The position numbers and the translations under genes are program-made. This document shows positions 1,454 through 41,592 of a DNA stretch of 45,172 nucleotides, one piece after another; position 1 is the stretch's first letter; each line of letters begins with the position of its first letter. This DNA comes from Klebsormidium nitens. Its lineage: Eukaryota > Plantae > Klebsormidiophyceae. Below the pieces are notes generated by a model. It was not told where the DNA came from and did not search any database. It saw only the letters and a list, made by a program, of their open reading frames with translations. The stretch lies in the NCBI GenBank assembly GCA_000708835.1, contig DF237625.1, positions 1 to 45,172 on the forward strand. The letters are read 5' to 3'.

Positions 1454-4303
1454 TACTGGAGCCCAAAGGCCCTGTACACGGCAGTGTCGCTGGGAGTGCC
1501 TGACGCGCTGGCTGCAGCTGGGGGGCCACAAACAGCCGGTGAGCGGCCGAACAGGGCCCTGAGCCACCTTTTATTTCTCAAGATGGGATGCTGCGAATCA
1601 TTCCTGTCGAGGATGCACTAGAATGTCATAGAACCTGCCAATATATCCTTTCAATGCAGAGGGCCTATTTGCCAACAGGTTTCGACAGACAGCTACAAAC
1701 TAGTCAGAATAACGCACGGCAAGAAGTGACTGGCGTTGGCAGTGTGACTCACTGTGCCCGGATTAGCTCCTCAGAAAGTGGGCTTATACAGATTACCCGC
1801 TTGTGCTTCGAAGACCAATCGAAAAGTCTGGTTGCGCACAAGTGGTTGTAAGCTTACACACCTTTCCACTTTGCTAACCACATCAACGCCCTGCCTACAG
1901 CCGAAATTGCACGAAGAGTTGGTGCAAAAGAGGCTTCCCTCCTACAACGCCTGCTGCGAGCGCTGGCCGCAAACGGATTTTTCACCGAGTCAGAGGACGA
2001 GGATCCGCGGTATGGACTTAACGAAACCAGCAACCTGCTGACCAGCCAAGGCCCCTTTGCAGGGTTTGTTCTTCATGAGGTAGGCAGCTGTCATATACAG
2101 TTTGCTTTTCAAAAGTTTTGCTTTAGAAGGGATCTGCAATCTTCGTGCAGACGGTTCGATTTCCTTGCCTGCAATGTCTACAGAGCTAGCTGTCTTGGCT
2201 GACGCAATCATGTGAGGTTAGTCTTCAGTTTTGAATGTGCTAAAATACCCTGAGCATATGCGTACTCCTCCAATATCTAGCTTTTCAAAAGTGCCCAAAA
2301 GTTGGTCTAAACGGAGCTGCTAATTCAGGATTTCGAACGCCTTCAACCTCAAACCTCACATTCAAGCTTCGAGCACGAGTTTTGATCGAGGGTTTCAAGC
2401 TTCGAGTCCCTTCTCGAATCGCTCCTCCGAAACTCAGTGCGCTGCCTTTTGCAGTGCGAGCCCGCTTCCTGGTTGGCATGGGACAAGTTGACGGAAGCCA
2501 TACAGAACGGAGTCCACGAGGGCACGTACCCGTTCGAGCTGGCCACAGGGGGCAAAAGCTTCTTTGGCTACTACAAGGTGCGTCGTTAATGTTTTACTTC
2601 TTCTCAGCTGTGGTGGATCTGGCAGAGCAAGCGTCAAAACCTGGTCTGAGTTCCTGTGCTTGTAACTCCGTCTCTGGTTGAAGTGCTTGACTGAACGATG
2701 AAAGGGGCCCCTCCTTCTTTCGACAGCCAACAGGAACAAGCTGCCTGCCACTTGTCGACAGGCTCGGTTGGTCCTCAAGAGGAGGTCCGCTGGACCTCGC
2801 TCGTAGGAACACGTCAGAATGGGGCAGATTGTTTCGCCTCAGATTCTTCTAGGTGTCTGGGCTGAGATCTGGGTTAAAGTTGTCGCCGGTTCCCTTGCAG
2901 GAACACAAGGAGTCCGCCAAGTGGTTCAACGACGCTATGCAGACATGGTCGCTCGTTCAGGTGAGAAGCTGCTGACCACCTTGAAACCGAAACGGAGATC
3001 GTTTCTCTTCTGCGAAGCTCACTTGGTTCATATTCTATCACGAAAATAACGGGGAAGAGGGCAGCGGCTGCCTTTCGTGGTGGGATGACTGTTTTCGAAA
3101 CAGCATCATCCGACTTCCAAATATCTAGCGTTGCAGAAGGTTTGAAACTTTCCTTCCAAGCTAAGCCAAGCACACCAGAAAGGAACGTTGCGAACGCTTC
3201 GTATTCTGCAGGGCGAGGGCGATCGGTCACGATCCAACGTTCGCGTCAAACGTTTTCACGGCAACTCGACTCAATAGACACTTGATCACGAAGTTGCCCA
3301 GTGCTCGACCCTCTCTCCCCTCAGGGCCACGCTTTGCTGGAGCATTACGCCGGTTTCAAGTCCCTGACCGGTACGCTCGTCGACGTGGGCGGCAACCGGG
3401 GGGTCATGCTGTCCAAGATCCTGGCGCAGAACCCCAACATAAACGGGGGGGTCGTCTTCGACTTGCCACACGTACTGAAGCAGGAGGGGGTGGTGCGGCA
3501 GCCCAACGTTCGGCTCGTCGGGGGGGACATGTTTAAGGAGGTCCCGAAGGCGGACGCGATCTTCATGAAAGTGAGCGGTCCGGCAGAAAGTTGGAGAGGC
3601 AGATCTGGAAGAGCTGCTGTGAGGGGAAGTTGAGACTGCGCATGCCCAACCCGGCCAGGCCGGGGGATTGTTATCCCGATATGCCACAGGCTGTTGCTGC
3701 GCTTGTGATGCATTCAAAGGTGATGCCGCTTGGATCCGTCGGTCTCGTTCGTTCTGTTTGAATCCGTTACTTTACAGAGAATTTGATTGGGTTGATTCGT
3801 TGAGATTATCAGCCGATTGCTCGTCAAAACGAGGTTGTGCCAATGGTTTTCGTACTCGGAAAAGCGAGGACACTGGCTGCACTCGAAATCTTGGTGCAGA
3901 TTGGTGCCTGACGGCCTCAGTGCCTCAATGCCTCAATGCCTTATCGAAGCTCAGAATTGTCCTGTCAAGCTCGTAAATCGGCATCTGGTTTCTTCAGATG
4001 ATCTGCCACGACTGGGACGATGAGGCCTGCATCAAGCTCCTGCGAAACTGCCACAACGCTCTTCCGGTCGGGGGGAAGCTTCTGGTGGTGGAAGTGGTTG
4101 TGGCTAACCCGGGGCAAACCGGGAAAGAAACCCTGTACAGCAAGGAGTTTGACTTGCACATGCTGGCGCTCCTGGGGGGGGGCAAGGAGCGGACGGAACG
4201 GCAATGGCGGAATCTGCTCGAGGGGGGGGGCTTTGAAGTCGTGGGGATGACCCCCTGCCCGAGCGTGGCGTTACAACACGTGATTGAGGGGGTCAAGAAG
4301 TAA
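1454..4303 (+). CDS. SAM-dependent O-methyltransferase, class II / COMT-like (dimerisation domain plus Methyltransf_2 domain), spliced
   Basis: Phase-consistent GT-AG exons: 1454-1538 (YWSPKALYTAVSLGVPDAL), 1901-2079 (EIARRVGAKEASLLQRLLRALAANGFF...YGLNETSNLL), 2455-2577 (WLAWDKLTEAI...PFELATGGKSFFGY), 2901-2960 (AKWFNDAM), 3325-3570 (LVDVGGNRG, VVFDLPHV, VGGDMFKEVPKADAIFMK) and 3998-4303 (ICHDWDDEACIKLLRNC...GKLLVVE, DLHML...GGKERT, stop). All plant/bacterial OMT motifs appear in order. The true N-terminus is uncertain. Confidence 0.93.
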
Positions 4304-5622
4304 AACAACGGAATGTCGAGTGGAGCGTTCCTTATTGAGCGCTTAGCTGGGCACCGCCTAGCAGATTATATTGGTTAGCGCGTGCATTTCGATGTTAGTC
4401 AGGAAATCCTCGATGTATATAATTATAATGTAGACTGCTGATGAATCACGAGATTAAACATGATTAGAAGAATGTTCAAGCTTCTTTTACTTCGAATTCT
4501 TGGCAGCGAAAGTAAGATGACAATTTTGAACAGGATATCAACGGCAGTACTATACCTTAGCCTGTATCGCAAAATAAAGTCGGAAACTTCATGCCCCCTC
4601 ATCCCCCTGCAGCCTGCTCTAAAATCCGATTGGAAACTTCCGAGAAAGAAGGACGTGTATGCAAGCAGCAAAAGTGTCCTGAGTCGTACGATCATGCAGA
4701 GCTCGATCTGCAAGCTGCAGACCTCTTCATTAACTAAACTGATGGAGCAATCAGAGTTGCTAGCTGCAAACGCGGTGGTTAACAAGCTCACAACTGCAAA
4801 CTGGGTCCAACTGAATATGGTCTCTTTCGTACTCGTATACGAACGCCTCGAGTCAGTAGCTAGTCACTGGCTAGGTAGTACCCTAGTAGCAAGTACCGTA
4901 ATACCCGTAGCTACTGGACAGAGACTCGACCCGATGTCCGATTTCAAAATGCTGGCACCATCCCTGGGCGCAAGGTCGCTTCCCCGGGATGCATGTCTCA
5001 GTTGGGATAAGCAGCTAAAAGGCCCCGGCAGCTAGTCCCGGGCTCTATAGAATGGCCGGGGGCCCGTTCTAATGCGGCGACGCGTAATTGTACGGATCAG
5101 ATTTTCCGGACGTGATCGAACGATCAATAATTGCACGAGATTCTGTAATGATGGAGCGCGACGTCACAGCCTCCCGCCTCGGGAAATGGACCCAGATTTT
5201 AGCTAATGCCGGCCACGTCCAATGGAACGCAGGCGGCAGGGCCGAGCCACTTGCAATGACTTGATTGAGCTGTCTTTCGGACAACTTTGCTTCCAAGGTC
5301 ATGACAGGATACTCCAGCCTCAGGCAGTGCCAACCCAGACCAAAGACGTCCGCCTTGTGTAGCACTCATCGCCCAAAAGACTTGATCCAAACCTGCTCAG
5401 CTGGTCTCTCGCGTTGATACATACCTACATCACGTGGTCGTGAAGACACCAGGTCTGTGGCAGCTGCCACTGGTCCACAAGAAGCAGGCCTGCTGGTCAG
5501 GTGTGCGAGCAATGAGCTTTGATCAGCAACAGCGACTTCATTAATCCAGCTGAAGGGACACCGGGCCGCCTTCGCTCGCTTAAGAAAAACACTCTAAATT
5601 GAACGTGCATCGCCATCTCAAT

Positions 5623-8600
5623 ATGGCTGATCCCAGGCATGCTGCGAGGACCCTCCCCAAGGTGCTCGCCTTGCAAGCGGCACAAAGAGGAGACCAGCCC
5701 TTTCTGCTGCTGCCCCGAGTAAGTATGAGAATCATGACCAAATTGCAGGCCGGCTGGCTCACTCGCACATGCTCTGGCAGTTTCTTGTCCCAGGTCAACG
5801 CTGTTGCAAATGTTGTTTTGGCCCGCGCATTGAGCGATGCAAGAAGCTGATGTGCAGAATGCTGATGCAAGCGGGATGAGCTCCATGGTTCCCCGACCAA
5901 CACGTGAAGCGGGACCCTAGCTTATGTTGGTGTTTGTCTCAGACCAGTTGAAGCACCTCAGGTTCAGCCTCTGTAGTTCATCGCGCCAACTTATCCATGT
6001 TTATGAACTCCTTTTGCAGGCACAAAGCAATGGGATCTCACAGAATCAGGCAGCGGACGGTGCGCTCAAGTACCACACGGTTACTTTCAGCCAGTTTCAG
6101 CAAATGACTTTTCAGGTGGGATCCTTAGCTATTTGCAGCTCTGGCTTGAACATCATTGCATTTTATGATGAGGGCAGATGGAGTAGCTCTTGAAACCAGA
6201 GACATCATTGCATTTGCTTTCAAAGCTTGCTTCCAGAAAGCACGCGCACCACTGCCACCTCTGCTGGGGCCCTCCTTTACTTTCCATCATTTATGCCTCT
6301 TAGGTGTTTACTATGTGGTTAGGTTTGTTTAATCATCACATTCACTCGCGTCCAACTGTTGTTTGTCCGAGATATTTTACTGCGCTCTACACTTCAGTAC
6401 CAAGTTACGATGTTGCATGTCCTGATCCACATTACAGCACCTCTTCATTCTTTGCCAGCCCTCCTGGTCATCTGCCCACCGGCCAGTTCCTGTGTCCAAA
6501 TCAATTCAAGTCAGCAAAGCATAGCTCTGTACTGAAGTAAGTTTTGTCTGATCATTTCGTTGGTAGCTTTTGCTAATGGGCTTGTCTTCCTCTCCCACAG
6601 GCTCGGGCCCAACTGGTCCAGGTGACGACTCCTTTGGGCGGCACATGCCGCATCAGGAAGGGCGACCGAATGGCCATTCTGGCAAGCAACTCCCCAGAGT
6701 ACATTGTGGCCACGTTTGCGGCGTGGCTGCAGGGGGCTATGACTGTCAACCTCTCGACGCGCGTCGGAGACGAAGCGCTGCAGGTGCGCTGAAGGGGCGC
6801 TCGCCGTGACACGTGCATCTGAATTTGCGGGACGCCAACTTTTGGTTTTTTGGGATCTCAGGGCTGTGGACTAGCTCTAATGATCCTGGAAACAATCGGT
6901 TTGGCTTTGACTACTCTGTAGCATCCTGATAATTTTGACGCAAAAGTCCGGCACACTGAGGTCTCAAGAATTCAAGGGTCTTGGGCTCTGAGGCTTCCAG
7001 GGCGTCCTATCCTTTTCTCAGATCATTGCTGACATCAGCACCCGCCTTGCAGCACTTGGTGTCACAGTCTGCCCCTTCGGTGCTGCTGGTCTCGCAGGAG
7101 TGCGAGTCTGCGGCAAAGCGGGTGCTCAAAGTGAGGCCTCAGACCTTAAACACTGATCAAAGACCGTCTGTAGGGCAATTCTTGTGAGCTCAGCAAAGCA
7201 TTTGCGGTTTCATTCGGATCACACGGACGTTGGTTGGAGAACCTTAGCCCCATCAGATCTTTAGCTGCAGCTTTTGGCATTCAATCGCAGTATCACTGAA
7301 GTAGCAAACGGCGGATTCAGGCACACAGGAACCTCCAGATCCCCATCTTGAGACTCGAGTTTAGCGCTTCCTTGAGAGGCCATTGAATGGCACCAGTCAC
7401 ATTGCGCTCTTGCCGGCTCTTACCATCCGTTTGCTTGTGCACCAAGCGTCTGGTATATTGCATTTCAAGCTGCCAATTTGTCCCATTACAGACGCTTGAT
7501 GTCCCAGACCGCCCGTTGCTCCTGCGGCTGAACATGGGGGTGCTGGCAGGAGCGGTCGCCTCTGGCTCGAGTGTCCTGCCTCCGATGTTCACGATAGTCG
7601 TGGATGGCGAGATGAACGGCCACCCGACGCAAAGCAACGGTGCAAAAGAGAGCCACGTAGCCACCGTAGAAGTGGACGATCGGGACTATTCAGAGGTGGG
7701 CAAACACGGCAGAGCGGCGTAGTTATTCGCTAAAATCTGTGGTTGTTTGAGAAAAGCAGTGAAAGAGTTAAGTGGTCGCCCCAATGGGTGGTCATTTCTG
7801 ATGGTCAAGCAGAGCCCCTTGCCTTCAGATCCTTTTGAAGCTAAGGCTTGAGTTTGTCCGAAGATTACATTGCTAGCGCCAAGTCTCTAGCACGGTCTGC
7901 AGAGGCAAAACACTGCCTAGTCCGAGTCGAACTTGGCAGAGGCCAAGCCTGCTTTGGTGCCGGGAGACTGGGGCAACTTGCGGCAGTCACGTCCGATCTG
8001 TTCTTCTTCGAAGTTCGATAGAATTGTATTTATCGGGCATTCGTCTTCGATCCCGTAGCAATCGGTGCAGAAATCCCAGGAATTTGGAGTGTGACGGAAG
8101 CCCGCAATCGTGACGTCCTCAAAGAGTGGAGAGTGGAGAGGGGACAAGGAATACTCTGACATGAAGCTCCAAAAACAGATGCTCACGATTGTTTCTTCCG
8201 CGCCCCAGGCCTTTGCTCCGGCGGTCATCATGCACACGGGGGGGACAACCGGGCTGCCCAAGCAGGTCGTCCGTAACCATGACAGCCTGATCGAGCTGAT
8301 ACGCATGATGCACGTAAGTCACTCCGAACCATGACCCAATTGTGAAGAGCACGTTTAGATACAGCTAGGAGGGGAGCTTCAGTCAGTCCAGCGCTGATTA
8401 GAGAAGGGGACTTTTCCGGTCGATATCGATCTTCAAAGCGGCGTCAATCTTCAGAGCGCATGTGGTCTCTAAAAAGGGGACCTTTGAAAACGGAGTCGGT
8501 CTTGAAATCAATGGCAGATCGGCCATTCAAGGTCCTGATTTGTATTCCGTGGCCGCGATTCGTATTACGCCTCGGAGCAACTGGGGTTTGTAGCGACACT

Positions 8601-11600
8601 TTCTGGAGATGGTCAGCTTTCAGCATGCAGGCCCTTAAGAAATCGAGAATGGAGCTTTTACCTTTCGAACGGTGGGACTCAGATCTTGCTTCCGTGTAAG
8701 GCAGTTCCAAGGACTACACCCGCTTCCGATAGAAGGCTCGACTCACCCGGAGCACGGTTCTTACAGCCGCCCCCAAGTTGCTTTGATCAGCCGAAAATCT
8801 CCTCGAACGCATGCCGTGCTGCTTTCTTCCTCTCTCTTTCGGCGCCCAGCTTATTCTCTAAAATGCGAGTATTTCCGTGTATCCTTGCACAAGGTGCTCC
8901 GCCTCCCACAAGAAGTAAATCATGGATATTTCTGTGCTGATTATGGGCTCGTCGAGAAGTGGTAACACTTTCAATAAGCAGACCTGGGCGGGGACCGGCC
9001 TCATAACCAGGTCAAAGCCCGCTTACTCTTTGAAGAGACCAGGCCTGAGACTCAAGTCTGGTTATTGGCCTGGTTAGCACCCAAACTACCCGTCCCCCTG
9101 CGCAGGATCTGGACCCCCCGTACGCTCCCCCGGGCACTTTGCCTACCCAGCTGGGCTGGATGCCCCTCTTCCACGCGATCGGGTTCATCATCGAAGTCGG
9201 CCTGCCCATCTACTCGGGCTCGCCCTACTACTCGGCGAAAGTGCGTTAAAACCGCTGTTGCTCCACTCTTCTGAGCATTTCCAAAGAGTTTACGTCTGGA
9301 GCTGTTGAGAACCCTGCTTCGACGAGGTTGATGCCCATTGTGTGCTGACTTTGAAACCACCCAAAGTGATCAGCCACGGTCATTTTTCCTAGCTTTGAAT
9401 TGCAGTCGTTGGCAGGTGGAAGGGGATATTCCTTCGAAGGCCACAGAGTTTGATGCTTTCAGTAATAGAAACAGCCCTCGCGGGATCGGTCAAAGGTTGC
9501 TTATCTTTCCTTAGGTCCTTTGCAAAAGACGTTTGATATCTTTGGGGGGGTGATGCCTCTGGAACCCTGCTCGCTCTGTGTACTGCATCTTTCCTCGCTT
9601 TCAGGCTTTTTCGGCAGCGTTTAGGTGTTGCGTTTGAAGGAACAACAGCACCACCCAGAGCTTCGATGCTCTGGATCCGTCAGCTGAGCGTGCAAACTAG
9701 TCCTCGACCGTAGCCCGCAATCTCTTCACTCGATGGATAAAGGTCCTACGTCGTCTCAAACCTCAATTCACCACAGCCCTTAGGCCTTAAAACCCTAAAA
9801 TCCTAATCCCTAATACCTCAGGATTACTAAATACCTAAAACCCTGAAATACAGTTCGCGGCCGCGCCGTCCCCCGAGGGCCTCCTCCAAGCGATTGTGGA
9901 CAGCGGGTCGCAGCTCATGTTCGTAGTCCCGATCATTGCCGAGCAGTGGTGCCACATGATCAGGCGGGAGGAGGAACAGCACGGGTCAGGACGTCGAAAC
10001 TTCTCGATCTCCATTGAATGATAAGCAGAAGAATCATAAGCCCCCGACGTAACCAGAAAGCCAAGACAAAAGGTCCACGCGCTTCGCACCCGCACCCCCC
10101 CTAACCCCGGTAACTAACCACAGGGTCAGGTGGAAGGATGCATAGCACGGGTTAGGCTAACCTCCTCTGTCACTTGGCCTCGGTTACTTTGCTTCAATCC
10201 GATCCGTTTGTCCAATCTGGGCTCTTACTTTCAGTCAAAATTCTGAAACCAAGCTGAAGCTCATTTGCGAGAATTCTACACCTACTAGTCCGGAGGGTCT
10301 CTTCTTTTCTCATCCGGCTAATGGAGCAGGGTTGATGGGGACGTCCTCCTTTCCGATGAAGGCCGTAATGGATGGTTTAGAAACCGTACGAAAAGATGGT
10401 GATGGATCCATCAGTCCCTGGTTGTGATGGGTCACAGTCTCGTGAAGTTCCCCTTGGCTTAGAACGAGTGCCGTCACCTGATTGATTAAATTTCTGGAAA
10501 CATATGCCAGCTGAACTTGAGCCTTTCTGCCGTGCTTGCAGGGAATCCAAGACGCTGACAACTCTCTTGACACTGCACGCGCTTATCTACGCGGGCGCGC
10601 CCCTGGCTGAGTGGGCCGGGTCGTTCTTGGTTTCAAAGTAAGGCGCCCTGTCAATTTCGCAAGCCCGCTTTATCTGAAGGAGCCTGCTTCGTATGCACAC
10701 ACTGAGCGTCTTTCAGAATCTAATGTATGCCGAACCATTGGACCTGACTTTTAAAGCGGGCTAGAGCGGGTTTGCCAGCGCGTAACATGCTTGGAGGGAT
10801 CCAGCTTTGGGTCAGAAAATACAAACCCATCCTTATTGTTTTGAAACAGTGTTGTTCAACGTCCGATATTCTGAAGTCTTTTCTGCCAGATTCACAAGCT
10901 TTGGCCCGTACATAATACACGTACTTATCCCGTTTGAAGCGTCAAAGACTCCACGAGAGTAGGCTGTCCTGAAGATCCAGACAAAGTGAAAATCTCCAGC
11001 ACCTCTCACACGGGGACATGTTTCTTCGTTTGAATTGCGCCCTGCTATTTTGTTTGCAGGCGAGCGATTGCGCAGCATCGCCAGCTTCTGGTCGCCAGGA
11101 TTTTCCCGATCGCCTGGAATTTCCCGAACTTAGGACGTTTCTACAAGATGAAGAAAATGGAACTGTCATTTCTAACTACTAAGCTCTCCTTTCTTTCAGG
11201 GGCGTCCGCCTGACCACTGCTTTTGGGAGCACGGAGATTGGCGCCGTGGCGTTTGGCTTCCCNNNNNNNNNNNNNNNNNNNNNNNNNNNNNNNNNNNNNN
11301 NNNNNNNNNNNNNNNNNNNNNNNNNNNNNNNNNNNNNNNNNNNNNNNNNNNNNNNNNNNNNNNNNNNNNNNNNNNNNNNNNNNNNNNNNNNNNNNNNNNN
11401 NNNNNNNNNNNNNNNNNNNNNNNNNNNNNNNNNNNNNNNNNNNNNNNNNNNNNNNNNNNNNNNNNNNNNNNNNNNNNNNNNNNNNNNNNNNNNNNNNNNN
11501 NNNNNNNNNNNNNNNNNNNNNNNNNNNNNNNNNNNNNNNNNNNNNNNNNNNNNNNNNNNNNNNNNNNNNNNNNNNNNNNNNNNNNNNNNNNNNNNNNNNN

Positions 11601-14478
11601 NNNNNNNNNNNNNNNNNNNNNNNNNNNNNNNNNNNNNNNNNNNNNNNNNNNNNNNNNNNNNNNNNNNNNNNNNNNNNNNNNNNNNNNNNNNNNNNNNNNN
11701 NNNNNNNNNNNNNNNNNNNNNNNNNNNNNNNNNNNNNNNNNNNNNNNNNNNNNNNNNNNNNNNNNNNNNNNNNNNNNNNNNNNNNNNNNNNNNNNNNNNN
11801 NNNNNNNNNNNNNNNNNNNNNNNNNNNNNNNNNNNNNNNNNNNNNNNNNNNNNNNNNNNNNNNNNNNNNNNNNNNNNNNNNNNNNNNNNNNNNNNNNNNN
11901 NNNNNNNNNNNNNNNNNNNNNNNNNNNNNNNNNNNNNNNNNNNNNNNNNNNNNNNNNCGCCGTGGCGTTTGGCTTCCCCGGGGGGGGGCCTACGTGGAGT
12001 GCTTTCAGACTGGCGGGCCCCCGGTGGGCAGATCACATCCGGTTTGTGGAGAGCCGCGTACCTGGCCACGTCATCCTCGGCGGTATGGCCACACTCCCGG
12101 GGATGGCGCAGGGTTACTTACAGTCGGTGGATCGGGAAACCGGGAAGATGAAGGTGGGAACAGGGGGCAAAACATCCAGCTTGTATATAATTTTCATAAA
12201 AATCTTTCTTCTTGTCGCTCTTCCAGTGAGAGCCCACAGCAAATTAGCGAAATCGACGAAGAGGAAGAATGCACAATAGACATAAAGTCCACTATTTTCT
12301 TCTCTTGCTGTATCTCACGCTTCCCTTCGTAAACGAGGAGCTCGTGACTACCTCTTAACGAAACATTGCGTGAAGGCTGCTCTTCGAACGCCCAATGGTC
12401 CTGCAGAAGTCCCCCGTTCTGATGCCTTTCATTCTAAACCCTATCGTAAACCATTACAAACCTTCTTTCAGTTTCGCCCTTTCGCCCCGTCCCCCGACGT
12501 GCCGACGGCGACCTATTTCTGCCCTTGATGCCTTACGCCGTAAAGTACCCTTAACCTTCTGTTCTGACTGCAAACTTTCGTACAGATCCGCCCTCTCGCC
12601 CCGTCTCCCGACGAGCCCTACCAAACGGGCGACCTCTTCACGGTCTACCCACATTCCTCGGACGGCCTCACTTGGATCAAGTCCGTAATTCGTGCGGACA
12701 ACTTGCTGGTTCACACGACCGGGGAGAAAACCAACCCAACAGCCTTCGAGGGGGCTGTCCAGGAGCTGCCGTTTGTCAAGGTCAGACTGCTAACCCACGA
12801 GGTTAAGACTGCTTGTTTGGCAAATTGTTCAGATTTTGCCAGGGCCGATGCGTACCCGCCAGCGTCTGGAAAGTGCTAAGAAGGAAAAATCGTGATAGTT
12901 CCAGGATCTCAGAAGGCTTGGATCTTGTCATCCTCGCCCCCTGGTCGAAACAGAGGCGTGTGTTTATTAAAGGTGACGTCAGCATGACAGTTGCAAGGAA
13001 AACAAGGGCACTCGAGTGAGCATCCTTCGCTCGCAAATTATCCAATGTGTGCACATTAACAAGTGGATAGCCCATTTCCCGTCAACGATTTCCTGCCGTT
13101 GCTTGGTGTGGAGAAGTGACGATTACGACGACACGTGTCGCTCGCAGGATGTGATTGCGGTGGGGAGCGGCTACCCGCGGCCGGGGCTGGTGGTCAAACC
13201 GGATTGGGCGGCAGTGGAGCAGCTGACACCGGTGGGTCAAGGCAAGGAGGTACGTCGGTCTTGTCCTATCTTGGCTGATAAGCGCTTCCGTCTCAATTGT
13301 TCTGTGACTTTTTTGACGTCTTACAGGCCTTCGCAGGAGGGTTCGTGCTGTAAACCTGGTTGATGTACTGGCCTTGAGTCTGTCTAAAGGACAGACAAGC
13401 CGGCTTTATCCTTGTTACCGTCTTGTTCACATATTGTCAGCTTCTAAGCAGCCCGTAACCGACCATGATTAACCACCAGAAACCCTGTGGAAGTAGCACT
13501 TCCTCTCATATCACTCCCTTATTGAGGTTGAGCTCTTTAAAGCTCCTACCTGGCTGACTTGGTTCCGCTACCGCAGCACGCCTCTTTCACAAGCGACTTT
13601 CTGCAGAACACTCCCGGAGTACACGAAAGCTCTCCAGAAAGATTCCAAAGGAGGAGATTCCCCACATCGCACCGGTACTCACCGACATGCTCTCAATTGT
13701 TTGATTTCCCATCCGTCAAAGTTCTCAGCTTTGGGCCAGTCTCCGTCCACTCAGAGCGTTTTGAGGCTGCCTCTGGTCAATCAGACGAGCTTTGTCGAGT
13801 GTTTCGAATACGAGCTGATACTAGTCGTCGTTTGCAGGAGTGGGTCCGTGGCCAGGTGTGGGCGTTGATCCAGGCAATCAACAAAAAGATGCCGTCCAGC
13901 TCGTGGGTCGCGCGAGGGGCGATCTGCGTTCTCTCGCCACAGGATTCGGAAGAGGTGGGGCTTCAATCTGCTCCGAAGCTTGTGGCTTCTGCAGCTAAGC
14001 GGTCTGACACTTCGCCGTTTCCGAAGTGTGGAAACGGCGAAGAAAAGTGATGGATTGTGCTGTTCGTACCCCAAAGGATTCGTTCTGCTTCAAGCTTATC
14101 TAGTCCACGATTGTGACCTCGGCTGTTCGACGTGTCGGTTTAGCTGCGGTCTAGATGCAGGAGACAAATACTAGTCCTTAAAGGAGGACGAAATAGAGCG
14201 ACTTACCTTCTTCGCGCTGTGCAAAAGTCAGATTTCAACGTAAAGCGATACCTGTGCAGAAGGAGGTGACTGCGTGGGAGAAAAGTGGGTGATCGCCTCA
14301 CAGAGATGCCTTCTAATGACTATTTTCATAGGTCACGTTCCCGCGGACCGTCAAGGGCGAGATAGCACGTGGCCCAGCGAACGAGCTCTTGAAGAGCCAC
14401 GTGGCAGCTATGTTCGCGGGTCTTGAAGCGCCTCCACAGAAGTCTGTCCTTCCGGTGGCGAACGGTGTACACACGAAG
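5623..14478 (+). other. Adenylation (ANL-superfamily) domain of A-T-R copy 1
   Basis: Motifs: KGDRMAILASNSPEY (A2), IMHTGGTTGLPKQV (A3), WMPLFHAIG (A4), AFGSTEIG (A5), YQTGDLF (A7), RADNLLVHTTGEKTNP (A8), FPRTVKGEI (A10). Confidence 0.9.
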
Positions 14479-20197: not shown

Positions 20198-20235
20198 GTG
20201 GGTCCCAGTTTCTTCATATGCAAAGGGCTACCGGA

Positions 20236-20350
20236 GTCCGAACGGGGTCCGAATCTGACCTGAATCAGGCCCGAAACAACACTGCCACATGTCCGACTAG
20301 TCCGATTGATGTCCGAACTGGATCCGAAACGGTCCGAACTTGGTCCGAAA
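20236..20350 (+). repeat. Degenerate short tandem GTCCGA(A) repeat
   Basis: About 8-9 copies of TCCGA. Six consecutive copies at 20292-20348 are spaced 9-11 nt apart. Confidence 0.6.
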
Positions 20351-30300: not shown

Positions 30301-33300
30301 TGCTCGACGAATTCGACTGCCTCTGGCATTACCCGCGCTTCTGCGTTCTTCTCAGTAGGTTCCAGCAGAAAGGCCACCGACACGCTGAGACGAAAGCAGA
30401 ACCGGCTGAGTCAAGTTTTTTACGGCGCTTTCTCGTCGTTCAGACACACTTACGTTCTTCTGAGGAACAATTTAAAGAATGTTAACGTCGACGGGACTTG
30501 GAAATGCACGTGGCCAGGTGCGCTAAAATAGAGGCAGGGGAGCGTCCCCATTTTACTAAGCTGTTAACTATGCACCGGGCTAGAACAAACAGAATATCGA
30601 TTACCGTTGCGGAGTCAGAAGAGACTGAACGAAGAGATCAGGGTGACGGAGATTCATCGACGTTGAAGGCAATGGACAAGGTCAAGAGGCAGAGCACCTG
30701 TTTACCTGGATGTGAACTGGAAGGGTTTTGGCGGTCCCACCCCTTGAAGGGCGAAGCGAACAATCTCTTGCAGGCTGCAAGTACAGGTACAGCTGTCAGC
30801 CCCTCGTACGAAACTCTACCAACAATCAATAACACAGCAGCGGACTTGCAGTGTAAACGTATTTGGCTTTTATGACCCCCAACTTAGATGTTAACTTTCC
30901 CAGACCCAAGGTGCTACCGTTCCTCGGATCCCGGAAGCAGCTATCTGTACACAAGCCGAACGTTTGAGTCTGCTGAGAGCCAAATTCTCTGCGCCGCACC
31001 TTTTCACATTGGCCTCCGCGAGCTTCTCGTACTCTGCGGTCAGGTGCACGGCTGCCCCGCAGTGGATTACGGTGTGAACGCGCTCTCCCCAGAAGCGCCA
31101 CTGGTCGGAAGTCATCCCCAGGAGCGGCTGCTGCCGGTCGCCCAGCACAACGACCACCCGGGCGCTGTCGAACCTGGAGGACAAGCACTTACTTTTCTTG
31201 CTTATCGAACCGCTGTTTTCCTTCTTTTTGTAAGTACCACAGAAAAGCCAAGGCTTTGGAACTTGAAGTTGTCTGCTGGCCTTTTGACCGTGTTGAGTTC
31301 AAAACGTTCGCGTTCTAAGATAGAAAGAGATTGAAGGCCGTGCCTGTGTAAACGAGCAGCTGAAGCCACCCTGTGAATTGCACTGCAGCTTCAGAATAGG
31401 GATCTCTTCGCTTTTGATATGCATTTCTGCTGAACCCGGTAACACGGATTTGCGAAATCGAAGAACGATTTGAAGAGTTTAAAGTAGCCAAAAATTTCAG
31501 GTACTTCGCCTGGTCTCGGCTTCCACTCTCGATTCGCGGATTGTTTGAAAAGCTTCTGAAGACAGTGCATTCAGTAGACACCAGCAAGCCTAGCGCAGGT
31601 TTCGGTTCGACTTCCGTTCTCCTTCCGGATCCTCACCGGGTGCCGGATTCCCGCCCCTTGCTCGTCCGCAGTAGAGCTTGCTGCAGCCGGGACTGGCAGG
31701 CGGCGACCGAGGGCCCCCAAACCAGGCACACCACGGTCGCCACCTCGTCTGCTGGGCGGCTCAAGAGATCCTGCAGGGCTCGAGGTTTTGAGGTTTTTGA
31801 GCGTTTAGAGTATAGGCCTATGAAAAATTCGAGGACCGCATTAAATTCGAGGACAGCATTCGCGATTTCTGGATAAACAGCCGTTCGCTGGGCTAGTCGC
31901 TTCATAGGAAGCGAACGGACACTGAGAGGTTCGCTCGAAATGCTTGATAAGCTGTGGATTATGCACGTCCATTCAAGAAAAGACCGCACGCGTGTGCAGT
32001 GCCATTAGAGGGCTGATAGAAAGCCATTCTTGAGCTCCACGATTGCGGCAACGTTTTTGCTGGCCCGCTCTGCCTTTCGGTCGCTCCTCAACTCACTTGT
32101 AATACGTGCGAGCCGATGAACCCAGTAGCGCCCGTCAGAAGGATAACGGTGCCCTTGACCTCAGACAGGCCGTCCGAAATGTGGTTCGGGAGAGTACCAG
32201 GGACCTGCGCACAGCAAGGCTGGGGCTTATTTCAACTTTCGCTTCGTTTCCAAAAAGAAAGCAACGCAAAAACGGGGAGGTTCAGAAAGACTGAAAAACG
32301 TCACACGAAAGAAACGAGCGCCGTATTTTCATCCCGCATGTGCTCAATCATGCAAGAAGGAGAACCATCAAGATATGTCAGGCTTCTCTCCGACTCGAGG
32401 TGAAATGGTTAGCGCACATGGAGCATGTCGGCGTCAGCGATTGAGAAGCAAGAAGAGAGCGGAAGTACTGGGCCGACGAATGTAAGAGCCCTCGAGTTCG
32501 CTCACTTGGTTGCGAACTCTACCTTCGCAAAATCTTCAACTTTCAACGCTACTTGTGATATCTAACATTGATCTTACGAGGCGGCCCGGAAAAGCTACTT
32601 GTGATATCTAACATTGATCTTACGAGGCGGCCCGGAAAGTTCACTTGCTATGAAGAGAACTTCGGTGGTTCACTCAAGAATCTTTCTAGCGAAAGGATGT
32701 AACTTCAATCTCTGAAAAGGATCTTTCTGTAAGGAACATCTATCTTACGTCAGGACAACATCAGCTTGCTCGCTTGAGGCGGATACTCTCACCGGTCCGT
32801 TTGATTGCGCTGCATGCTTGGTCTTCGTTTGCATGGCAGCGGCTGCCCACTCGGCGAGGGCGACCACGTCAGGAACGTCCTCGTACAGCATGGTCGCCGG
32901 AAGGGGGACCCCCACGAACTCGGAGATTAACTGCGCCAAATGACACATTGGATTTGAAAGTAGAACTGGATTGAGATAAAATCAAACTTCTGACTTTGGC
33001 GAAAGAGAGGAGAGATTGCGGAGAAGAACCCAGCTCTTTGAATTTGGATTGCGCATACTGCATGGACGCTCGTTCTACCTCATACAATAGCTTCTTCACA
33101 GCCTTCAAGATAAGACTGCCCAGAAAGCAAAGGCAGTTTTTGAAACCTGAAAACAAATCTACGTCATCTGAACGCGTAAAGTCAGGACTTCTATCAGACT
33201 AGATTTGGCTACCGCAGGGCCTAAGGAGGTTCTTGATTACAAAACTGGGCGCTCTGAAATCACCCTCAGAAGAAGTGCCCGAGAAACTTTACCTTGGCCA

Positions 33301-36300
33301 GCTCGGTCGCTGTCAGACTGCTGAGGCCCAAGTCCAGAAGCGGGGGTGCTTTGCCCCCGGACTGAGCGTCCAGTTCTTGCGCATCCAGTCCCAGGACTTG
33401 GGCGGCTGTCCGGCGGACGGTGTCCAGAACTCTGTTGAATGTCACTTCCTTTTCCTGCAAGTATGACAAAAGACCTCGTTTCGGTCGGGGCCTCCATTTG
33501 AGGATTTTCAGTGTTCGACAGCGCTTCAGAAGACCTCAGTAAACACCTCTTACTATCTTCAAACAAGCTACAGAAGAATCTCATAGAAACCTCTGGTCAG
33601 TCTTCTTTCATTTAGCCACGGGTACGAAGCACCTTGGCGTTGCCAGCTTCAGCTGACGGGTCAATGTGGATCTATTAAACGAGCAGAATTGACACAGGCT
33701 TTCCGTAAAAGTCGGGAGGTTGAGTAAGCAGATCGATACAAGGACGTCCAAGAAATGAGAGTGCTGCCATTAAGAAAACGAAGATTAACCTCAATTCAAA
33801 AGACCGGCTGCCATGCAATGGCATGAGTATCTTCAGATGAAGCTCATTTTTTGAAGATTGAAAGCGCTGACCTTCGTCTGTGCAGCGTTTGTAACTGGAG
33901 GAACCGAATTTTCTGACAGTGCTTCAAGACCCGCGTACATGGCTGCCACGTGGCTCTTCAGGAGCTCGTTCGCTGGGCCACGTGCTATCTCGCCCTTGAC
34001 CGTCCGGGGGAAGGTGACCTGTGGAAGGAACATGGTCAGTGAAACGTAATGTAGCGAAGCAGGGTTCCCGCTCTTTGCGTTATCCTCAACTCGTCTGTAA
34101 TTTCTGCTTATAATCTCAAGTTTCCCGAAGCGCGGGAGGAGAACTTCATCCACGTAGGCCACCTTCAAGGAATCCGGCAGCGAATTATTGCAGAAGATTG
34201 ACACGTGAATCGTCCGACGGACCCTTTAGCTTGGAAAAGTTTTGAATGACCTTTTGAAGTAACGGCAGTCACACCTATTTCCTTCACGTCGACCCACACT
34301 CCGATGCTCCTCAGAAAGAAAATATTGGGTGCAGAAAACCAGATTCCTGCTAGCAGGAAACCGCCCCACCTTTTGAGAATCTTCTTGGGAAAGAACGCAG
34401 ATCGCTCCTCGCGCGACCCACGAGCTGGACGGCATCCTCTTGTTGATGGCCTGGACCAAAGCCCACACCTGGCCTCGGACCCACTCCTGAAAGAGGAGGA
34501 GGATAGAAGTTTTTCACGACACAAATTGATTAAGTTGAACACAAAAGTGAAGCCTCGAAGTGGTCGGTTTGGAAGGCTGCGGATTGGGCTGTCTGACGAT
34601 TCAAACGTCAAGAGATCAGCAGCAACCTTGTTTTCTGGAGCGATCGATGGGGTCAGCAACTGACACCTTCTCTTGCATTTCTTGCAATCTTTCCTTGTAC
34701 TTGCGAGCATGAGACGAAACTGCTTGTAGAAATAGCTGGTTCATCAGCAGAAGCAGTGAGGTGGGACCTATCGCGGGCCAACTCCGCAAGGGTTCACCAA
34801 AGGACCTTAGAAGGCAATATCAAAGCTCAGCTCCAAGCAAGATTTTTCAGTTACGAGGAAGCTCCCGAGCATCTCTCGCTTTCAAAGGTCACAGAAGTCA
34901 CGAATGTTCGAGCGACGGATTGGGTGCACCATTCTTCCTGTTCTAGCCATTCAGCCAGACGTTACCGCGAGATCTCTTGCAGATGAGAAAACAATTTGAG
35001 TTAAAGCTGGATCTGACGTACCTCCTGGTCCTGACCTGCTGACGTCAGCTGCTCCACAGCCGCCCAGTCCGGTTTGACGACCAGCCCCGGCCGCGGGTAA
35101 CCGCTGCCCACTGCGATCGCATCCTGCAAGTGACACGTGTCATTTTGCAGATGATTTCCAATCAAAGCCGACAGCGCGGTATCGCTGATCAGGAACGGGT
35201 GCCACGTCCCCTGCACTAGCTCAGTGATACTTCGCGAGCAAGTGGTATCTGCTCGACTGCTCTCATTTTAGCTGCAGTCGCATGCTGACGTAAATCTTCC
35301 TTACGCTAACGGCCCAGCTTTTCGCGCAGGGGAGAACTGGCAGCGTCTCCAACACTAGCAGACACTGAAACAGCACTAGTTCACCTTCTTGTTTAACACG
35401 TAAAGAACCTTCCAGAGCTGACGCGTCCCACGGCAACCCTGCGGAAGTAGATGTTCCTAACCATCTTGCCTAAATCTGGTGGGCTAGCAGCCTGACCTGA
35501 ACAAACGGCAGCTCCTGGACCGCCCCCTCGAAGGCTGTCGGGTTGGTTTTCTCCCCGGTCGAGTGGACCAGCAAGTTGTCGGCCCGGATGACAGACTCGA
35601 TCCACGTGGCGCCGTCAGAGGATGGGGGGTAGACCAGGAAGAGGTCGCCCGTTTGGTAGGGGACGTCGGAAGACGGGGCGAGAGGGCGGATCTGTAAGAG
35701 GGTTTGAGGTCGTTTACAGAGGGTTGTAAGTGGGTTTAGGAAGGGCATCGAAAGGGTGGGAAGAGGTCGCCCGGGATGGGGTGAGAGGGCGGCAGCTGTA
35801 GAAAGATTTGCAGTCGTAACAGAGGTTACAATCAAGTTACAGGAGGTTAAGGAAAGGTGAAAAGTGAGCTTATAGAGGGTGTAAGGGTGAAATTACGATG
35901 AGATGACGGCATCAGAGTGGCAGGATTCTGCATTTACCGAAGCAGCCGCGACAGCATGGATCGTTGACTGTTAAGCACAAGCTCGAATCACCAGCAGAAC
36001 GTGCCATCTGGTTCTACTCTCGTGCATTCTTTTCTTTCCTCGTTTTCGCTATGCTGGCATTCTACACGCAAAAGAACCGAAACAAAGCATCTAAAGAAAG
36101 CATGCGAAACAGGAAGGGTATGAGCAGATATCTGTCTCCCGTCCCACCTTCATGTGTCCGGCTTGTCAAGATACCGACTGCAAGAACTCCTGCGCTAATC
36201 TCGGTCTAGTTTCATTTGATTGGGCTCTGCTGTCGGATTACACGAAGAGCATGGAAGAGAAAGATGAAATATCAAGATTAGGAGTTGGATGTTTTGCCCC

Positions 36301-39300
36301 CCTCCCACCTTCATCTGCCCGGTTTGCCGATCCACCGACTGTAAGTACCCCTGCGCGATTCCCGGAAGAGTCGCCAGAGCGCCTAATATGACGTGCCCAG
36401 GCACGGGGCTCTCCACAAATCGCACGTGATCTGCCCACCGGGGTCCCGGCAGTCTGAGTGCACTACGCGTAGGCCCCCCCCCGGGAATACCGATCGCCAC
36501 AGCGCCAATCTCCGTGGTGCCATAACCGTTGATCAAGCGGACGCCCCTGGGAAAAGAAGTAAATAGCGTATGTAACCTTAAGAGGAGAGATGACGATTAT
36601 GGAGTTGGGGAGAGTGTGCGGAGAATAGGTGAGCTCGAGGGGGACCATAAGCCTGCGATGCTGCGCACTAGGTCGCCCGATTTCCGCCTAAGAGGGGCCC
36701 CGTTTAGATCTAGGAGGCACGGTTCCAAGACACGGTTTTCCTTGGGACTTTGAAGGGTTTGACAATCTTGGCTGATGGTTTTCAAGTTTGACTGCGTTTA
36801 TGCATCTTTCGATCTGCTCGAACAGGCATTTTGTGACAGATGCTTGATTGGACCCTCCTTGTGTCAGTGCCAGGCAACAATGGCAAAAATATCTTGATAC
36901 GAACCTTTGCTTTGCCTTCGCACTCGCTAGCGTTCAAGGTGAGGCGTGAAACTCGATACACTGCAAACAATGTAGAATTGCGGGGAAGCAGAGATGTATC
37001 CGCTTTAGTCAAATAGATCGGCTGATTAATCGGATGCAATCATAGGGCTTTACCTTGACACCATGAACTTCCACGCCCAGTCAGCCAGCGGTGCTCCGCA
37101 GCACTTCAGCGAGTGTAGTGTTAAGAGTGTTGACAGCGTCTTGGAATCCCTGCGCGCATAGCACAAACGCAGGCATCAGATCTTCTTCCTTTGGAGATAG
37201 CGCGCCAGATGTTGATAAATCAGGTGACTGCGCTGGTTTCGCGCGGGCAAAGCTTACCAGAATCTGACTCGTTGTAAATATCGACATGATCCTGCAATGT
37301 TCGTTGCTTGCACCTTCCAACCATGTTTCAGAATGACAAGCGGGTACGACGGAGTGCTTTACCTATGTTTAGCCGGATAGCCAAAGAACAGGCTTTCTTG
37401 GCCTGTTAAATCCAGTTCCGTTCCTTCCTTGGCAGGAAGATAAGATTCCATCTTATCTTCTGCGAACGAAGAAATTGTACGGGGACCGACGAAAGGCCCT
37501 ACCCGTGCGGTTCCTCTTCCCGTTTGACCATGTGGCACCACTGCTCGACGATGATGGGGACCGCGAACATGAGGTGCGACCCGCTGTCCTCGATCGCCTG
37601 AAGGAGGCCCTCGGGGGTCGGCGCGGACGCGAACTGCGTGTCGGGGTTTTACAATTTCGAAACGTTAAAGGATCAAGGGTTTGGACGACGCAGGAAGAAC
37701 TTTCATCGAGAAATGCCTTCGCGAATTTGCACTAATTGTGCGCTCGGCGAGACGAATCTGGAGACTCAAATCTCTGGACGCTGCGCTTGTCGCTTAGAGG
37801 AGCAGCTTCTGGCAGAGCGCAGAGCAATAAGGAGGCAAGGAACATGCCGCCAGCGGAGCAAGCAGGTTCCCTTCAAACAAAACGGACTTAGCACTTTCAC
37901 GATCGTTTGATGTCTTCTGTGGATCTCTCAAGCTTTGATGGGGATTTTGAATACTTTTGTGTCGATTCCAAGAGGCGGCGACCCTTCGGATTTAAATCTT
38001 CTCTTTTGACGTAGAGCATTCGAAGCGCAAATTAGCTTTGACCGGGACGAAGGTAGACTCTTCGAACTGTCGATGGAAGATCTCCGTGTTTCTGAGCGGG
38101 TTTCACCCTTAGCTGAGGACAGCAACTCGATGGAACTCCGCCGGTGGCTGACTAAGTCGTATCGACCGCGAAAATTTGAGGACTCAGCCTTCTTAAAAGG
38201 TGAATCTCAACATGAAGCTAGACCTTTGGAAAACGCCGAATTTGAGAAGAAAGGGAAACGTCCGAAACGCACCGTAGCCGAGTAGTAGGGCAAGCCCGAG
38301 TAGAGGGGCACGCCGATTTCGAAGAACCCGACCACATGAAACAGGGGCATCCAGCCCAACTGGATGGGCGAAGTCCCCGGGGGAGCGTTTGATGAGTCCA
38401 GGTCCTGCGCGGCAAAGAGGCGTAATGATTTTGAAAAGCCTAAGGCTCTAGAACTCCTAAAGCTCACGAAAAGGAGAAGCAAGAGGAATGAAAGACAAAC
38501 GGACACCAGGATGCTCCTGACCAAAAATTCATCGGCTTTACGCGATGAAGTCCAGGCCAAATGAAGAAGTGGGGAAAAGGCTGGGCGCCGAAAGAAAGAA
38601 ACAGAGTGAAGAAAAGGAGCACGGGAGGCATTTGAAAGGCGAGACGAGTTATTTTGATCTAGGTTTCTGAAGACGACAACAAGGGCGGGTTTACGGACGT
38701 GCCTTGGGGCAGTTAGAAGTGCTAGCGGCAGTTTTGAAGCTCTGAAGTGTGCCGAGACGGAAGGCAATCTGGTAGTATCGGTCAAGCCAAAGGGCGAAGG
38801 CCGGAAGCTCTGGCAGAGGCACTCGTTTATGGTCCATCGCTCCGTCACGTCATCTCGAATCTCGTCGTCTCAGATTGGGCGTTACAATCATTCCTGCGAC
38901 CGCTCACCTCAGTCGCACGCGCTACTTCGACCAGGCTGTCGTGGCTGCGAACGACCTGCTTGGGCAGCCCGGTGGTACCTCCCGTGTGCATAATGACTGC
39001 CGGAGCAGATGCCTGGGGCGCGGCAGAAACATCCGACGGTCAGTTTCCAATTAAGCAAGCCATGTATTACCCCCTTGTCCCGCACCGATTTCAGAAAAGG
39101 CATCATTTTTCAAAGCTCCAAGCTTCGTAGAGTCCTCTTTCGTGTTCGAATAGCACCACAAACGTAGACTGTAATTGGTTTTGAAATTTGGACGAGAGCA
39201 GACTGGGCCTCGTGACAGCAAGTCCATCCAAACCAATGCAAGCCTGTCATAAAAGCTGTTCCACAACACCTGTTCTACTTTTCCACAGTGCATTACCGAT

Positions 39301-41592
39301 ATGCGTGGCGGACTATCTCTCGATTCTCAAACCTGATTTCTAAGAACTCACGTACAAGCGGCTCTCCGCCGTTCAAAAGCAGCCTGCTCGAACCTCAGAA
39401 CTGGTCGTACAGATCATAACCACTGGGTTATATCAACTATCATTAGCGTCATCAATACTCGCCCATTCTTCCCACCTCAGAGTAGTCCCAAACCTTCACT
39501 TCTGCCGCGCCCACGTGGCCCCCCTTTGCACCGTTGCTTTCCGCCGGATCGCCGTTCATTTCGCCATCCACTACACTTTTGTACATCGGAGGCAGGACCT
39601 TTGAGCCAGAGGCAACCGCTTCCGCCAGCGCGCCCTTGTTCAGCCGCAGGAGCAACGGGCGGTCTTCGACATCAAACGTCTGTAGTGTGCCGAAGTGCCG
39701 GTTTGAGATGCAAGAACTACTACGATTTCACGGAAGTTTAGACACAAATAATCGGGGCATTCAGGTCACAGCCGCAAAGGCATGTCAAGTGCTGCCAGGA
39801 GCGCAATGAGTGGTGCCTTTGGCTGGTCCAAGAAGGGCTTTACTTGAGTCTCAAGAAGGAAATCGCAAAGTTCGACGTTGCTGTGTGCCTGAAAGTTTGA
39901 GGCCGCCTATGTTACCTTCGAGATTCCCAATTCGACGAAACTGCTGACGAAATCGTTGGGCAAGATCAGCCGGGTTAGGTTTTGAGAACCAAGAGCGTGC
40001 TGAGCCGAAATGCTATGCTGAGCCGTACAAGTACTTCCCGGGGGCAAACGTTTGATCACTGTGTATGTGTTGAGAACTCACTTTCAACACTCGCTTTCCC
40101 GCAATCTCAGTCTCGGGAGAGACCAGCAGCACCGAAGGGGCGGATTGGGACACCAAGTGCTGCACGGATGAAGCTGGCATCAGCAACAACCTAAAGAATG
40201 GTGTCAAAAAGCGTGAGCAGCGTGCCCCACAGCCATAGAAGCTTCAAATCTCGTGTCCAGCCTTGACTCGTGCTCCGAAACAACTGGGGATTTTCCAAAG
40301 CTGNNNNNNNNNNNNNNNNNNNNNNNNNNNNNNNNNNNNNNNNNNNNNNNNNNNNCATGATATCACACCGACATAAGACCGCATGACAAAGCCCTGAAAG
40401 CGTGCCAAATTTCTGAGAATACCGGAACCGTGAACCCTAAGCCCCTACTTGGAAATCTCAGAAACACTGAAATAATGAAAAGCAGAAAAAACGAATGAAG
40501 GCCGCTTTAGCGCACCTGCAGCGCCTCGTCTCCGACGCGCGTCGAGAGGAGGACGGTGACCGCCCCCTGCAGCCACGCTGCAAACGAGGCCACAATGTAC
40601 TCTGGGGAGTTGCTCGCCAGGATGGCTACGCGGGCGCCCCTGCTGACGCGGCATCTGCCGTCCGACGAAGTTGCCACCTGGACCAATTGGGCCCGAGCCT
40701 GCGGTGGAAAAAGACAGGCCATGTAGCAAAGCAACAAAAGATTAAGTTGAGCAGAAGGTTCTCCATTATGTTGAATCGTTTCAATGAAAACATAAACAGT
40801 GCCACAGTCGTTTCATCAGGGGCCGGCAGGTAACTAGAAGGGGTGGACAGCGAAAAACGAGTTTAGCATGGTTCAACGCCTGTGAAGATTAAGGTGAGGG
40901 CACGTGCAGGATCGAGGGGTACTTCCACGTGAGCAGAGTAGATGAGTCAACCGAAGCGATGAGTCAAAAACATGTGTTCGAGGGGGGGCTTCAGCAGGGG
41001 CATTGGTACTAGTGCACGTGCGTCTCAGAAAAAAACCGAAGCAAGAAGTGGATCGAAGGCAAACTTATTTCCACTTGTCAGGGCTTGCTCCTGCAAGCTG
41101 CTCTCCAAAACATAAGCAACTTCTCCTCAATTGAGCAACTTCTGCAGATTGCCTATGAAGCCTTGCTCAAATAATTTACCTGAAAAGTCATTTGCTGATA
41201 CTGGCTGAATGTGACCGTGTGGTACCGTTCCGGGCCGTCTGCTCTCTGGTCCTTTGGATATTCATCGCCTGGGGTCTGCAAAAGCAGTTCGTAAAAAATA
41301 GTCAGCAGAAGGCAAAGCAAAGTCTAAACCTGAGAGTCTGAGTGCTCAATCCGCTTTCAGCAGCAACCTGCCTGATAAAACAGAGTTCCCTGCAGTGAAT
41401 CTGTGGATGAAATCTGTAAGCGTTCATCTCTTGGAAGAGTAAGTGGCAGCTCAAAAACGATTAAGCCAACCCCGGAAACCTGGTTGTAATCCTTACCTTG
41501 GGCAGCAACAGAAAGGGCTGGTCTCCTCTCTGCACCGATTGCAGAGCCAGCAGCTTGGGAAGAGTCCCAGCAGTGTGTCTCGGATCAGCCAT
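27359..41592 (-). CDS. NRPS-like A-T-R enzyme, copy 2 (inverted paralog), with an in-frame TAG at 28707-28705; possibly truncated or pseudogenising
   Basis: Exons 5' to 3': 41592-41497, 41275-41180, 40698-40516, 40159-40082, 39679-39476, 39012-38908, 38404-38273, 37633-37503, 37149-37054, 36546-36309, 35691-35497, 35123-35022, 34486-34370, 34018-33872, 33454-33293, 32930-32793, 32204-32097, 31770-31637, 31173-31000, 30774-30706, 30384-30264, 29940-29779, 29352-29264, 28780-28705, 28019-27891, 27418-27359. Motifs: IMHTGGTTGLPKQV, WMPLFHVVG, NGYGTTEIG, YQTGDLF, GEKTNP, FPRTVKG, LGLSSL, LTGATGFIGSH, GYALTK. Confidence 0.9.
32548..32638 (+). repeat. Near-perfect 46/45-bp tandem duplication in an intron of A-T-R copy 2
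   Basis: GCTACTTGTGATATCTAACATTGATCTTACGAGGCGGCCCGGAAA(A) occurs twice. Confidence 0.9.
40304..40355. other. Assembly gap (52 N) within an intron of A-T-R copy 2
   Basis: N run between exons 40698-40516 and 40159-40082. The paralog has no exon in this interval, so no coding sequence is expected to be missing. Confidence 0.9.

Follow-up and report, generated by a model that had tools for sequence, protein, structure and literature searches.

Carboxylate reductases in which adenylation (A), thiolation (T) and reductase (R) domains follow one another on one polypeptide are known from bacteria and fungi. The fungal representatives, which resemble nonribosomal peptide synthetases (NRPS-like), include the carboxylic acid reductase (CAR) of Neurospora crassa and PnlA of Pestalotiopsis (PMC5826065; excerpt of PMC9605436). 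In the Neurospora CAR, residues His237, Glu433, Ser595, Tyr844 and Lys848 are essential, and their replacement abolishes activity (PMC5826065). The bacterial enzymes are represented among solved structures by the CARs of Nocardia iowensis and Segniliparus rugosus (5msc, 5mso, 5msp). Here we describe a divergent, transcribed and intron-rich pair of A-T-R genes, ATR1 and ATR2, from the streptophyte alga Klebsormidium nitens, which widens the range of this class. The pair lies on contig DF237625.1; the window, i.e., the whole stretch of DNA analyzed, measures 45,172 bp and was identified by protein searches as one entire K. nitens scaffold, whose annotated proteins include KFL_006760020, KFL_006760030 and KFL_006760045. 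An O-methyltransferase (OMT) gene precedes ATR1 and a gene for an EF-hand protein lies between the two reductase genes (Table 1). With a probability of roughly 0.6, the locus is best read as an old inverted duplication of a CAR-like gene, with the EF-hand gene in the spacer and a plant-type OMT upstream, adjacent to each other but without a shared pathway.

The ATR exons were located by blastn comparison of the regions at 4.3-21.6 kb and 24-42 kb, which align in inverted orientation as 26 colinear blocks that correspond to exons and are 68-88% identical. Reading frames were picked by comparison of the paralogues, and splice sites were chosen to agree in both copies. The resulting genes have 27 exons each, separated by 26 introns of 220-790 bp that occupy identical positions and are all of the GT-AG type. 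ATR1 encodes 1135 residues once an assembly gap is collapsed (see below) and is intact to its stop codon, with the domains in the order A-T-R. ATR1 and ATR2 are 77% identical, with a Ks (synonymous divergence) of 0.45 and an overall Ka/Ks (nonsynonymous to synonymous ratio) of 0.29. These values, together with the shared intron positions, identify the pair, on sequence grounds, as copies of a single gene that was duplicated long ago in inverted orientation, with purifying selection acting on both.

ATR2 carries a premature TAG where ATR1 has GAG, and the public model KFL_006760045 (1050 residues) stops there; no alternative donor site was found near this TAG. The three exons that follow keep an open frame with a Ka/Ks of 0.37, and the TAG would therefore be recent, or else a difference of strain or sequencing. 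If real, it shortens the reductase domain by its last 87 residues. ATR2 is probably a copy that was held under purifying selection through most of its history and has recently been disabled or weakened.

Two gaps interrupt the scaffold. The gap within ATR1 exon 10 is, to judge from its flanks, an assembly artefact, because both contigs overlap there by 21 identical bases: the 21-mer at 11242-11262 is exactly repeated at 11958-11978, one copy on either side of the gap. When the gap is removed with one copy of the 21-mer, the exon becomes continuous and in frame ('...TEIGAVAFGFPGGGPTWSAF...') and is colinear with the uninterrupted ATR2 exon (36546-36309) and with the same exon in a related sequence, contig L001, described below. 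The length of a 3964-nt ATR1 RNA contig agrees with a 5' untranslated region (UTR) of 364 nt, a coding sequence of 3408 nt and a short 3' UTR taken together, which is a match of length only, the gap site itself not being read. The exons that surround the other gap, in an ATR2 intron, meet in frame just as their ATR1 counterparts do, whose joint is RNA-verified. The models equal the public proteins with few exceptions: 14 residues are absent from KFL_006760020 (P0007) at the false gap, and the public ATR2 model (P0001) differs by a 3-residue alternative acceptor and by the part that follows the premature stop, at which KFL_006760045 ends.

According to Pfam, both ATR copies contain AMP-binding, AMP-binding_C_3, PP-binding and NAD_binding_4 domains in A-T-R order on one polypeptide, i.e., the same four domains as the fungal enzymes. 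The best solved structures are the bacterial CARs 5mso, 5msc and 5msp, with E-values of 1e-22 to 1e-25; 5msc and 5msp align along nearly the entire ATR length, and 'MPLFHAIGF' of the alga sits on the CAR motif 'MPMSHVMG'. The A4 His, the phosphopantetheine-bearing Ser and the YxxxK motif of the bacterial enzymes all align with the ATRs. Each of the five residues on which the Neurospora CAR depends has a counterpart, mapped by motif rather than by direct alignment to that enzyme: H277, E487, S673, Y923 and K927. All five are unchanged across ATR1, ATR2 and two relatives of fungal type, and E487 lies 11 residues past the motif Arg, with the same spacing as in Neurospora. The fungal and algal proteins are also of similar size (about 1040-1140 residues). 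Unlike the fungal enzymes, with which they share 22-26% identity, the algal ATRs are encoded by genes with 26 spliceosomal introns in a streptophyte host and have an insertion that separates the A core from its C-terminal subdomain. Neither ATR reaches any NCBIfam equivalog cut-off. L-aminoadipate reductase (Lys2) was tried as an identity and rejected: TIGR03443, whose cut-off is 1030 bits, gives scores of 105 and 99, the match covers the R domain only, and the A4 position holds His, not Asp.

The ATRs most likely act as CARs do, by adenylating a free acid, holding it as a phosphopantetheine thioester and releasing an aldehyde at the expense of NADPH. The A-T-R chemistry proposed in the first-pass annotation, which was made from the DNA sequence alone, is thus upheld at the level of homology by the full-length likeness to solved CARs and by the intact catalytic residues. 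In the predicted cycle, the ATR1 A domain would use ATP to activate a free carboxylic acid, His taking the place of the Asp that binds an amino group. The acyl group would then move to the phosphopantetheine arm on the Ser of 'LGLSSL', an arm that would have to be installed by a transferase encoded elsewhere, and the C-terminal domain of the short-chain dehydrogenase/reductase type (GATGFIGS, YALTK) would free the aldehyde with NADPH. By analogy with the fungal sister group, the likeliest ATR1 substrate would be an aryl acid or a short- or medium-chain aliphatic acid.

Close relatives of the pair are rare. A phmmer search with a 79-residue ATR exon against 1.84 billion representative proteins returned only 6 matches: the K. 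nitens protein itself, four anonymous fragments of short length and a single weak NRPS match. The fragments come from genomic contigs, L001-L006, of three Logan runs (SRR23617210, SRR20627847 and SRR23617307); the contigs have a GC content of 54-55%, are 1.2-4.0 kb long and lie entirely within an ATR-family gene. They carry neighboring exons with the K. nitens intron positions and 45-89% identity per exon, and represent at least 4 distinct ATR-family genes. Consequently, a few related organisms also possess the ATR family, as several gene copies. A protein-pattern scan of JGI metagenomes, together with a degenerate DNA pattern for TGEKTNPTAFE, retrieved no further ATR relatives.

Full-length proteins of the same architecture are all fungal or without a stated origin, at 22-26% identity, and an Atlas feature search agrees. 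In a tree of 19 proteins, the algal pair forms the sister group of the fungal clade sampled, on a stem of 1.96 changes per site, and the bacterial enzymes fall outside this algal-plus-fungal clade. A tree of this small sample does not indicate transfer of the ATR gene from a fungus. Transfer of a whole fungal cluster was also considered and is unsupported: the OMT is of streptophyte type, and the ATR pair branches beside the sampled fungi as their sister, not from within them. In the literature searched, neither 'kfl00676' nor the accessions of the three runs with related fragments are mentioned, and the scaffold is absent from the supplements of two K. nitens transcriptome papers. In an antiSMASH survey, a single 'Other(A)' cluster is recorded for K. 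nitens and left uncommented (PMC7073580); it is probably the ATR locus.

The OMT is a plant-type protein. Pfam detects the Dimerisation (PF08100) and Methyltransf_2 (PF00891) domains, exon 7 aligns with plant OMT structures (E 1e-18), including the catalytic His of 'MICHDWDD', and the nearest Atlas clusters consist of Streptophyta OMTs. A dimerisation domain, an S-adenosylmethionine (SAM)-dependent domain and the catalytic His together place it in class I, the type of caffeic acid O-methyltransferase (COMT). With alfalfa COMT (1kyw/1kyz) it shares the domains, the catalytic His ('CHDWDD'), the length and the fold class; it differs from plant COMT by a 48-residue N-terminal extension, and its SAM motif reads VDVGGNRG, with GGN in place of the GGG usual in the family. 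It falls in the algal 'Chloroplastida OMT' radiations, within which K. nitens has a multi-copy clade of paralogues with unassigned substrates (de Vries 2021); the pocket that accepts caffeate or 5-hydroxyconiferaldehyde is described by the pattern M-S/T-N-G-G-G (de Vries 2021, following Louie 2010). The first-pass annotation had assigned the right family but had the gene start at 1454; its start lies 700 bases earlier, at 754, and the joint 897|1406 is present in RNA contigs.

Transcription was assessed from the share of sequence words of the segment 1400-7399 found in 24 listed RNA-like runs, with contigs aligned for four of them. In 10 of the 24, which belong to four studies, 8-14% of the sampled words are present; in the other 14, the share is 0-1%. 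ATR1 alone explains the higher values, since its 5' UTR from 5259 and exons 1-4 make up 817 of the 6000 bases (13.6%). The 3964-nt contig, assembled in two runs and present piecewise in another two, is spliced at 5718|6020, 6115|6601 and 6783|7053 and continues into exon 5; ATR1 transcripts are at least 99% identical in runs from 4 studies labelled as this organism. The OMT appears in the aligned contigs only as fragments of 118-250 nt, from contigs of 288 nt and 152 nt over the first joint and an unspliced piece of 250 nt. Its mRNA was assembled in none of the 24 listed runs, because the top word share of 0.14 is accounted for by the 5' part of ATR1; contigs show presence, not level or absence. 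As regards the co-expression put forward in the first-pass annotation as a check, the four runs aligned and the 24 compared by word share lean against it for the OMT and ATR1, with the reservation that contigs cannot prove absence. The unspliced contig, from run X2, spans 2082-2331, taking in the end of exon 3 and intron 3 of the OMT gene, and has a T>A difference at 2142; it may reflect intron retention, pre-mRNA or DNA carry-over.

The EF-hand gene lies about 960 bp from the ATR1 stop codon and 3.4 kb from that of ATR2, between the convergent 3' ends of the two reductase genes; it had been called nested, which the gene models contradict. Its product aligns over its own full length (residues 28-201) with the coelenterazine-binding protein of Renilla (2hps; E 2.5e-13), followed by the sarcoplasmic calcium-binding protein (SCP) of Nereis (2scp/1q80; 4e-9) and by aequorin and obelin (1e-8 to 1e-7). 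The loops EF1, EF3 and EF4 are canonical, and the Renilla protein likewise has three canonical EF loops at positions 1, 3 and 4. An Atlas model of the protein reaches a TM score of 0.75 against an SCP cluster, and an alignment-free model, with a pLDDT of 40, is too poor for comparison of cavity or fold. The full-length alignments confirm the assignment to the SCP/coelenterazine-binding type. The protein differs from the SCP/photoprotein family in its low similarity (E 2.5e-13 at best) and in a 27-residue N-terminal extension, and its predicted fold appears equally near to actinobacterial EF-hand proteins. The 3.4-kb spacer between the start of the EF-hand gene and the ATR2 stop (23500-26849) contains no recognizable gene; a Pfam MS_channel_3rd match in it stays below threshold (18.6 bits vs a cut-off of 21).

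The four genes were originally proposed to form a biosynthetic cluster that makes an O-methylated aromatic aldehyde, and their arrangement has some of that appearance. In a true metabolic cluster, the OMT and one or both reductases would act on one aromatic scaffold to yield an O-methylated aldehyde or alcohol, which the EF-hand protein would bind, or release in response to calcium. ATR1 and the OMT share a strand, with the OMT immediately upstream and under 1 kb away from the ATR1 transcript start; there is no unrelated gene among the four; fungal A-T-R reductases are commonly clustered, according to an excerpt of PMC9605436; and the Renilla member of the EF-hand protein's family binds a small aromatic ligand. 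By contrast, the locus holds only two enzyme families and one of the ATR copies is truncated, the OMT went unassembled while ATR1 is present in 10 runs, and the supposed partners have nearest relatives of different kinds, those of the OMT being streptophyte and those of the ATRs fungal, with the OMT belonging to a multi-copy Klebsormidium family (de Vries 2021). A working definition of plant-type clusters asks for at least three adjacent genes of different enzyme classes; an OMT, a duplicated ATR and one non-enzyme fall short of it. A metabolic cluster is thus an improbable account of the locus, and mere neighborhood without a common pathway is the most likely explanation for the position of the OMT and the EF-hand gene. 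An extended version of the cluster proposal, in which a lineage-specific CAR family, found elsewhere only in fungi and bacteria, would provide through ATR1 and the OMT a CoA-independent route from a phenolic acid to a methylated aldehyde, with a calcium-controlled carrier of the SCP type, is decidedly more speculative and has little chance of being correct. If it were true, an early-diverging streptophyte would use this route in place of the steps that 4-coumarate-CoA ligase (4CL) and cinnamoyl-CoA reductase (CCR) carry out in land plants.

The OMT would be irrelevant if the ATRs were fatty-acid reductases, which convert long-chain acids into fatty aldehydes or alcohols for surface lipids in the manner of the mycobacterial FadD9-type CARs. 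Among stand-alone ligases, the A domain scores best with models of long-chain fatty-acid CoA ligases, stand-alone AMP-binding_C_3 proteins are annotated as long-chain acyl-CoA synthetases, the R domain is of the 'male sterility' fatty-acyl-reductase type (NAD_binding_4), and the Neurospora CAR reduces aliphatic acids (PMC5826065). These ligase matches are, however, generic, reaching 60-93 bits where the cut-offs exceed 470; no lipid-pathway gene is nearby, and the closest full-length relatives are fungal A-T-R proteins, a family described in the excerpt of PMC9605436 as CARs for aldehyde generation. A role in surface lipids is conceivable but unlikely. An artefact, either a contaminant scaffold or copies that are alleles or the product of assembly duplication, might be suspected from the small size of the scaffold, its two gaps and its fungal-like genes. 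This suspicion is largely refuted: each ATR gene has 26 GT-AG introns, the scaffold has the GC content of about 52% seen in the rest of the window, a streptophyte-type OMT shares it, the ATR1 transcripts recur at near identity in runs from the 4 studies, three other runs contain relatives whose introns sit at the same positions, and the copies differ at 23% of residues, a divergence (with the Ks of 0.45) at which alleles and assembly duplication were rejected. Several observations nevertheless weigh against the favored reading, an old CAR-like duplication among unrelated neighbors. A tailoring-type enzyme directly beside a rare core enzyme has the look of a true cluster, and the OMT may be weakly co-expressed, as contigs do not measure expression. 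The CAR equivalog NF041592, which was built on bacterial CARs, gives 162 and 156 bits for the two ATRs against a cut-off of 1300. The TAG in ATR2 is seen in one assembly, and the Ka/Ks of 0.37 behind it also fits a sequencing error or a strain-specific mutation.

CCR-like genes are patchy in this lineage (de Vries 2021). For students of plant evolution, the ATRs offer a concrete candidate for aldehyde formation free of CoA esters.

Table 1. Positions of the genes, domains and gaps in the 45,172-bp window
Feature	Position	Strand	Details
OMT, plant COMT-like (presumably KFL_006760010)	754..4303	+	7 exons, 396 aa, introns GT-AG
OMT exons	754-897, 1406-1538, 1901-2079, 2455-2577, 2901-2960, 3325-3570, 3998-4303	+	joint of exons 1 and 2 seen in RNA
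ATR1 (KFL_006760020)	5259..20882	+	ATG 5623, stop 20880-20882; transcript start at or before 5259
ATR1 AMP-binding	6077-12021	+	Pfam
ATR1 AMP-binding_C_3	12697-14421	+	Pfam
ATR1 PP-binding	14920-15497	+	Pfam; Ser codon 15022
ATR1 NAD_binding_4	15931-18814	+	Pfam; Tyr 17761, Lys 17773
Spurious scaffold gap, ATR1 exon 10	11263..11957	.	flanks overlap by 21 nt
EF-hand gene (KFL_006760030; P0053)	23480..21845	-	exons 23480-23302, 22683-22479, 22108-21845; 215 aa
ATR2 (KFL_006760045)	41592..26849	-	ATG 41592, 1134 codons, frame kept to 26849 past in-frame TAG
Premature TAG in ATR2 (GAG in ATR1)	28707-28705	-	codon 1048, last of exon 24
Assembly gap, ATR2 intron 3 (40515-40160)	40304..40355	.	no exon affected

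The window is intron-rich, eukaryotic DNA with a GC content of about 52%, and Pfam and PDB matches confirm that the four genes exist in the families first named for them. The absence of housekeeping genes between them, offered as an argument for a cluster, is correct as an observation but weighs little, because the four genes make up nearly the whole 45-kb scaffold and a PARP-domain gene then follows at its right end. This gene, encoding a PARP catalytic domain, occupies 43731-45172 on the minus strand and is probably truncated where the scaffold stops; an open reading frame (ORF) at 44268-44549 matches Pfam PARP (E 3.9e-7), and an ORF at 43731-44195 has a PARP-like C-terminal motif, recognized by eye. 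Directly upstream of the ATR2 ATG, a 202-codon open frame without a Pfam match (41706-42311, minus strand) is either a further gene or mere 5' flank.

Short repeats occur at several places. A 46-bp unit in perfect tandem duplication lies in an ATR2 intron (32548-32638), and a perfect 21-bp duplication in the spacer that separates ATR2 from the EF-hand gene (24734-24776). The last ATR1 intron is rich in GTCCGAA-like short repeats at 20206-20400 (Tandem Repeats Finder, 20311-20350), and translated peptides suggest a similar GGTCCGA-rich sequence at 24981-25490 of the spacer, so that a small repeat family may be present.

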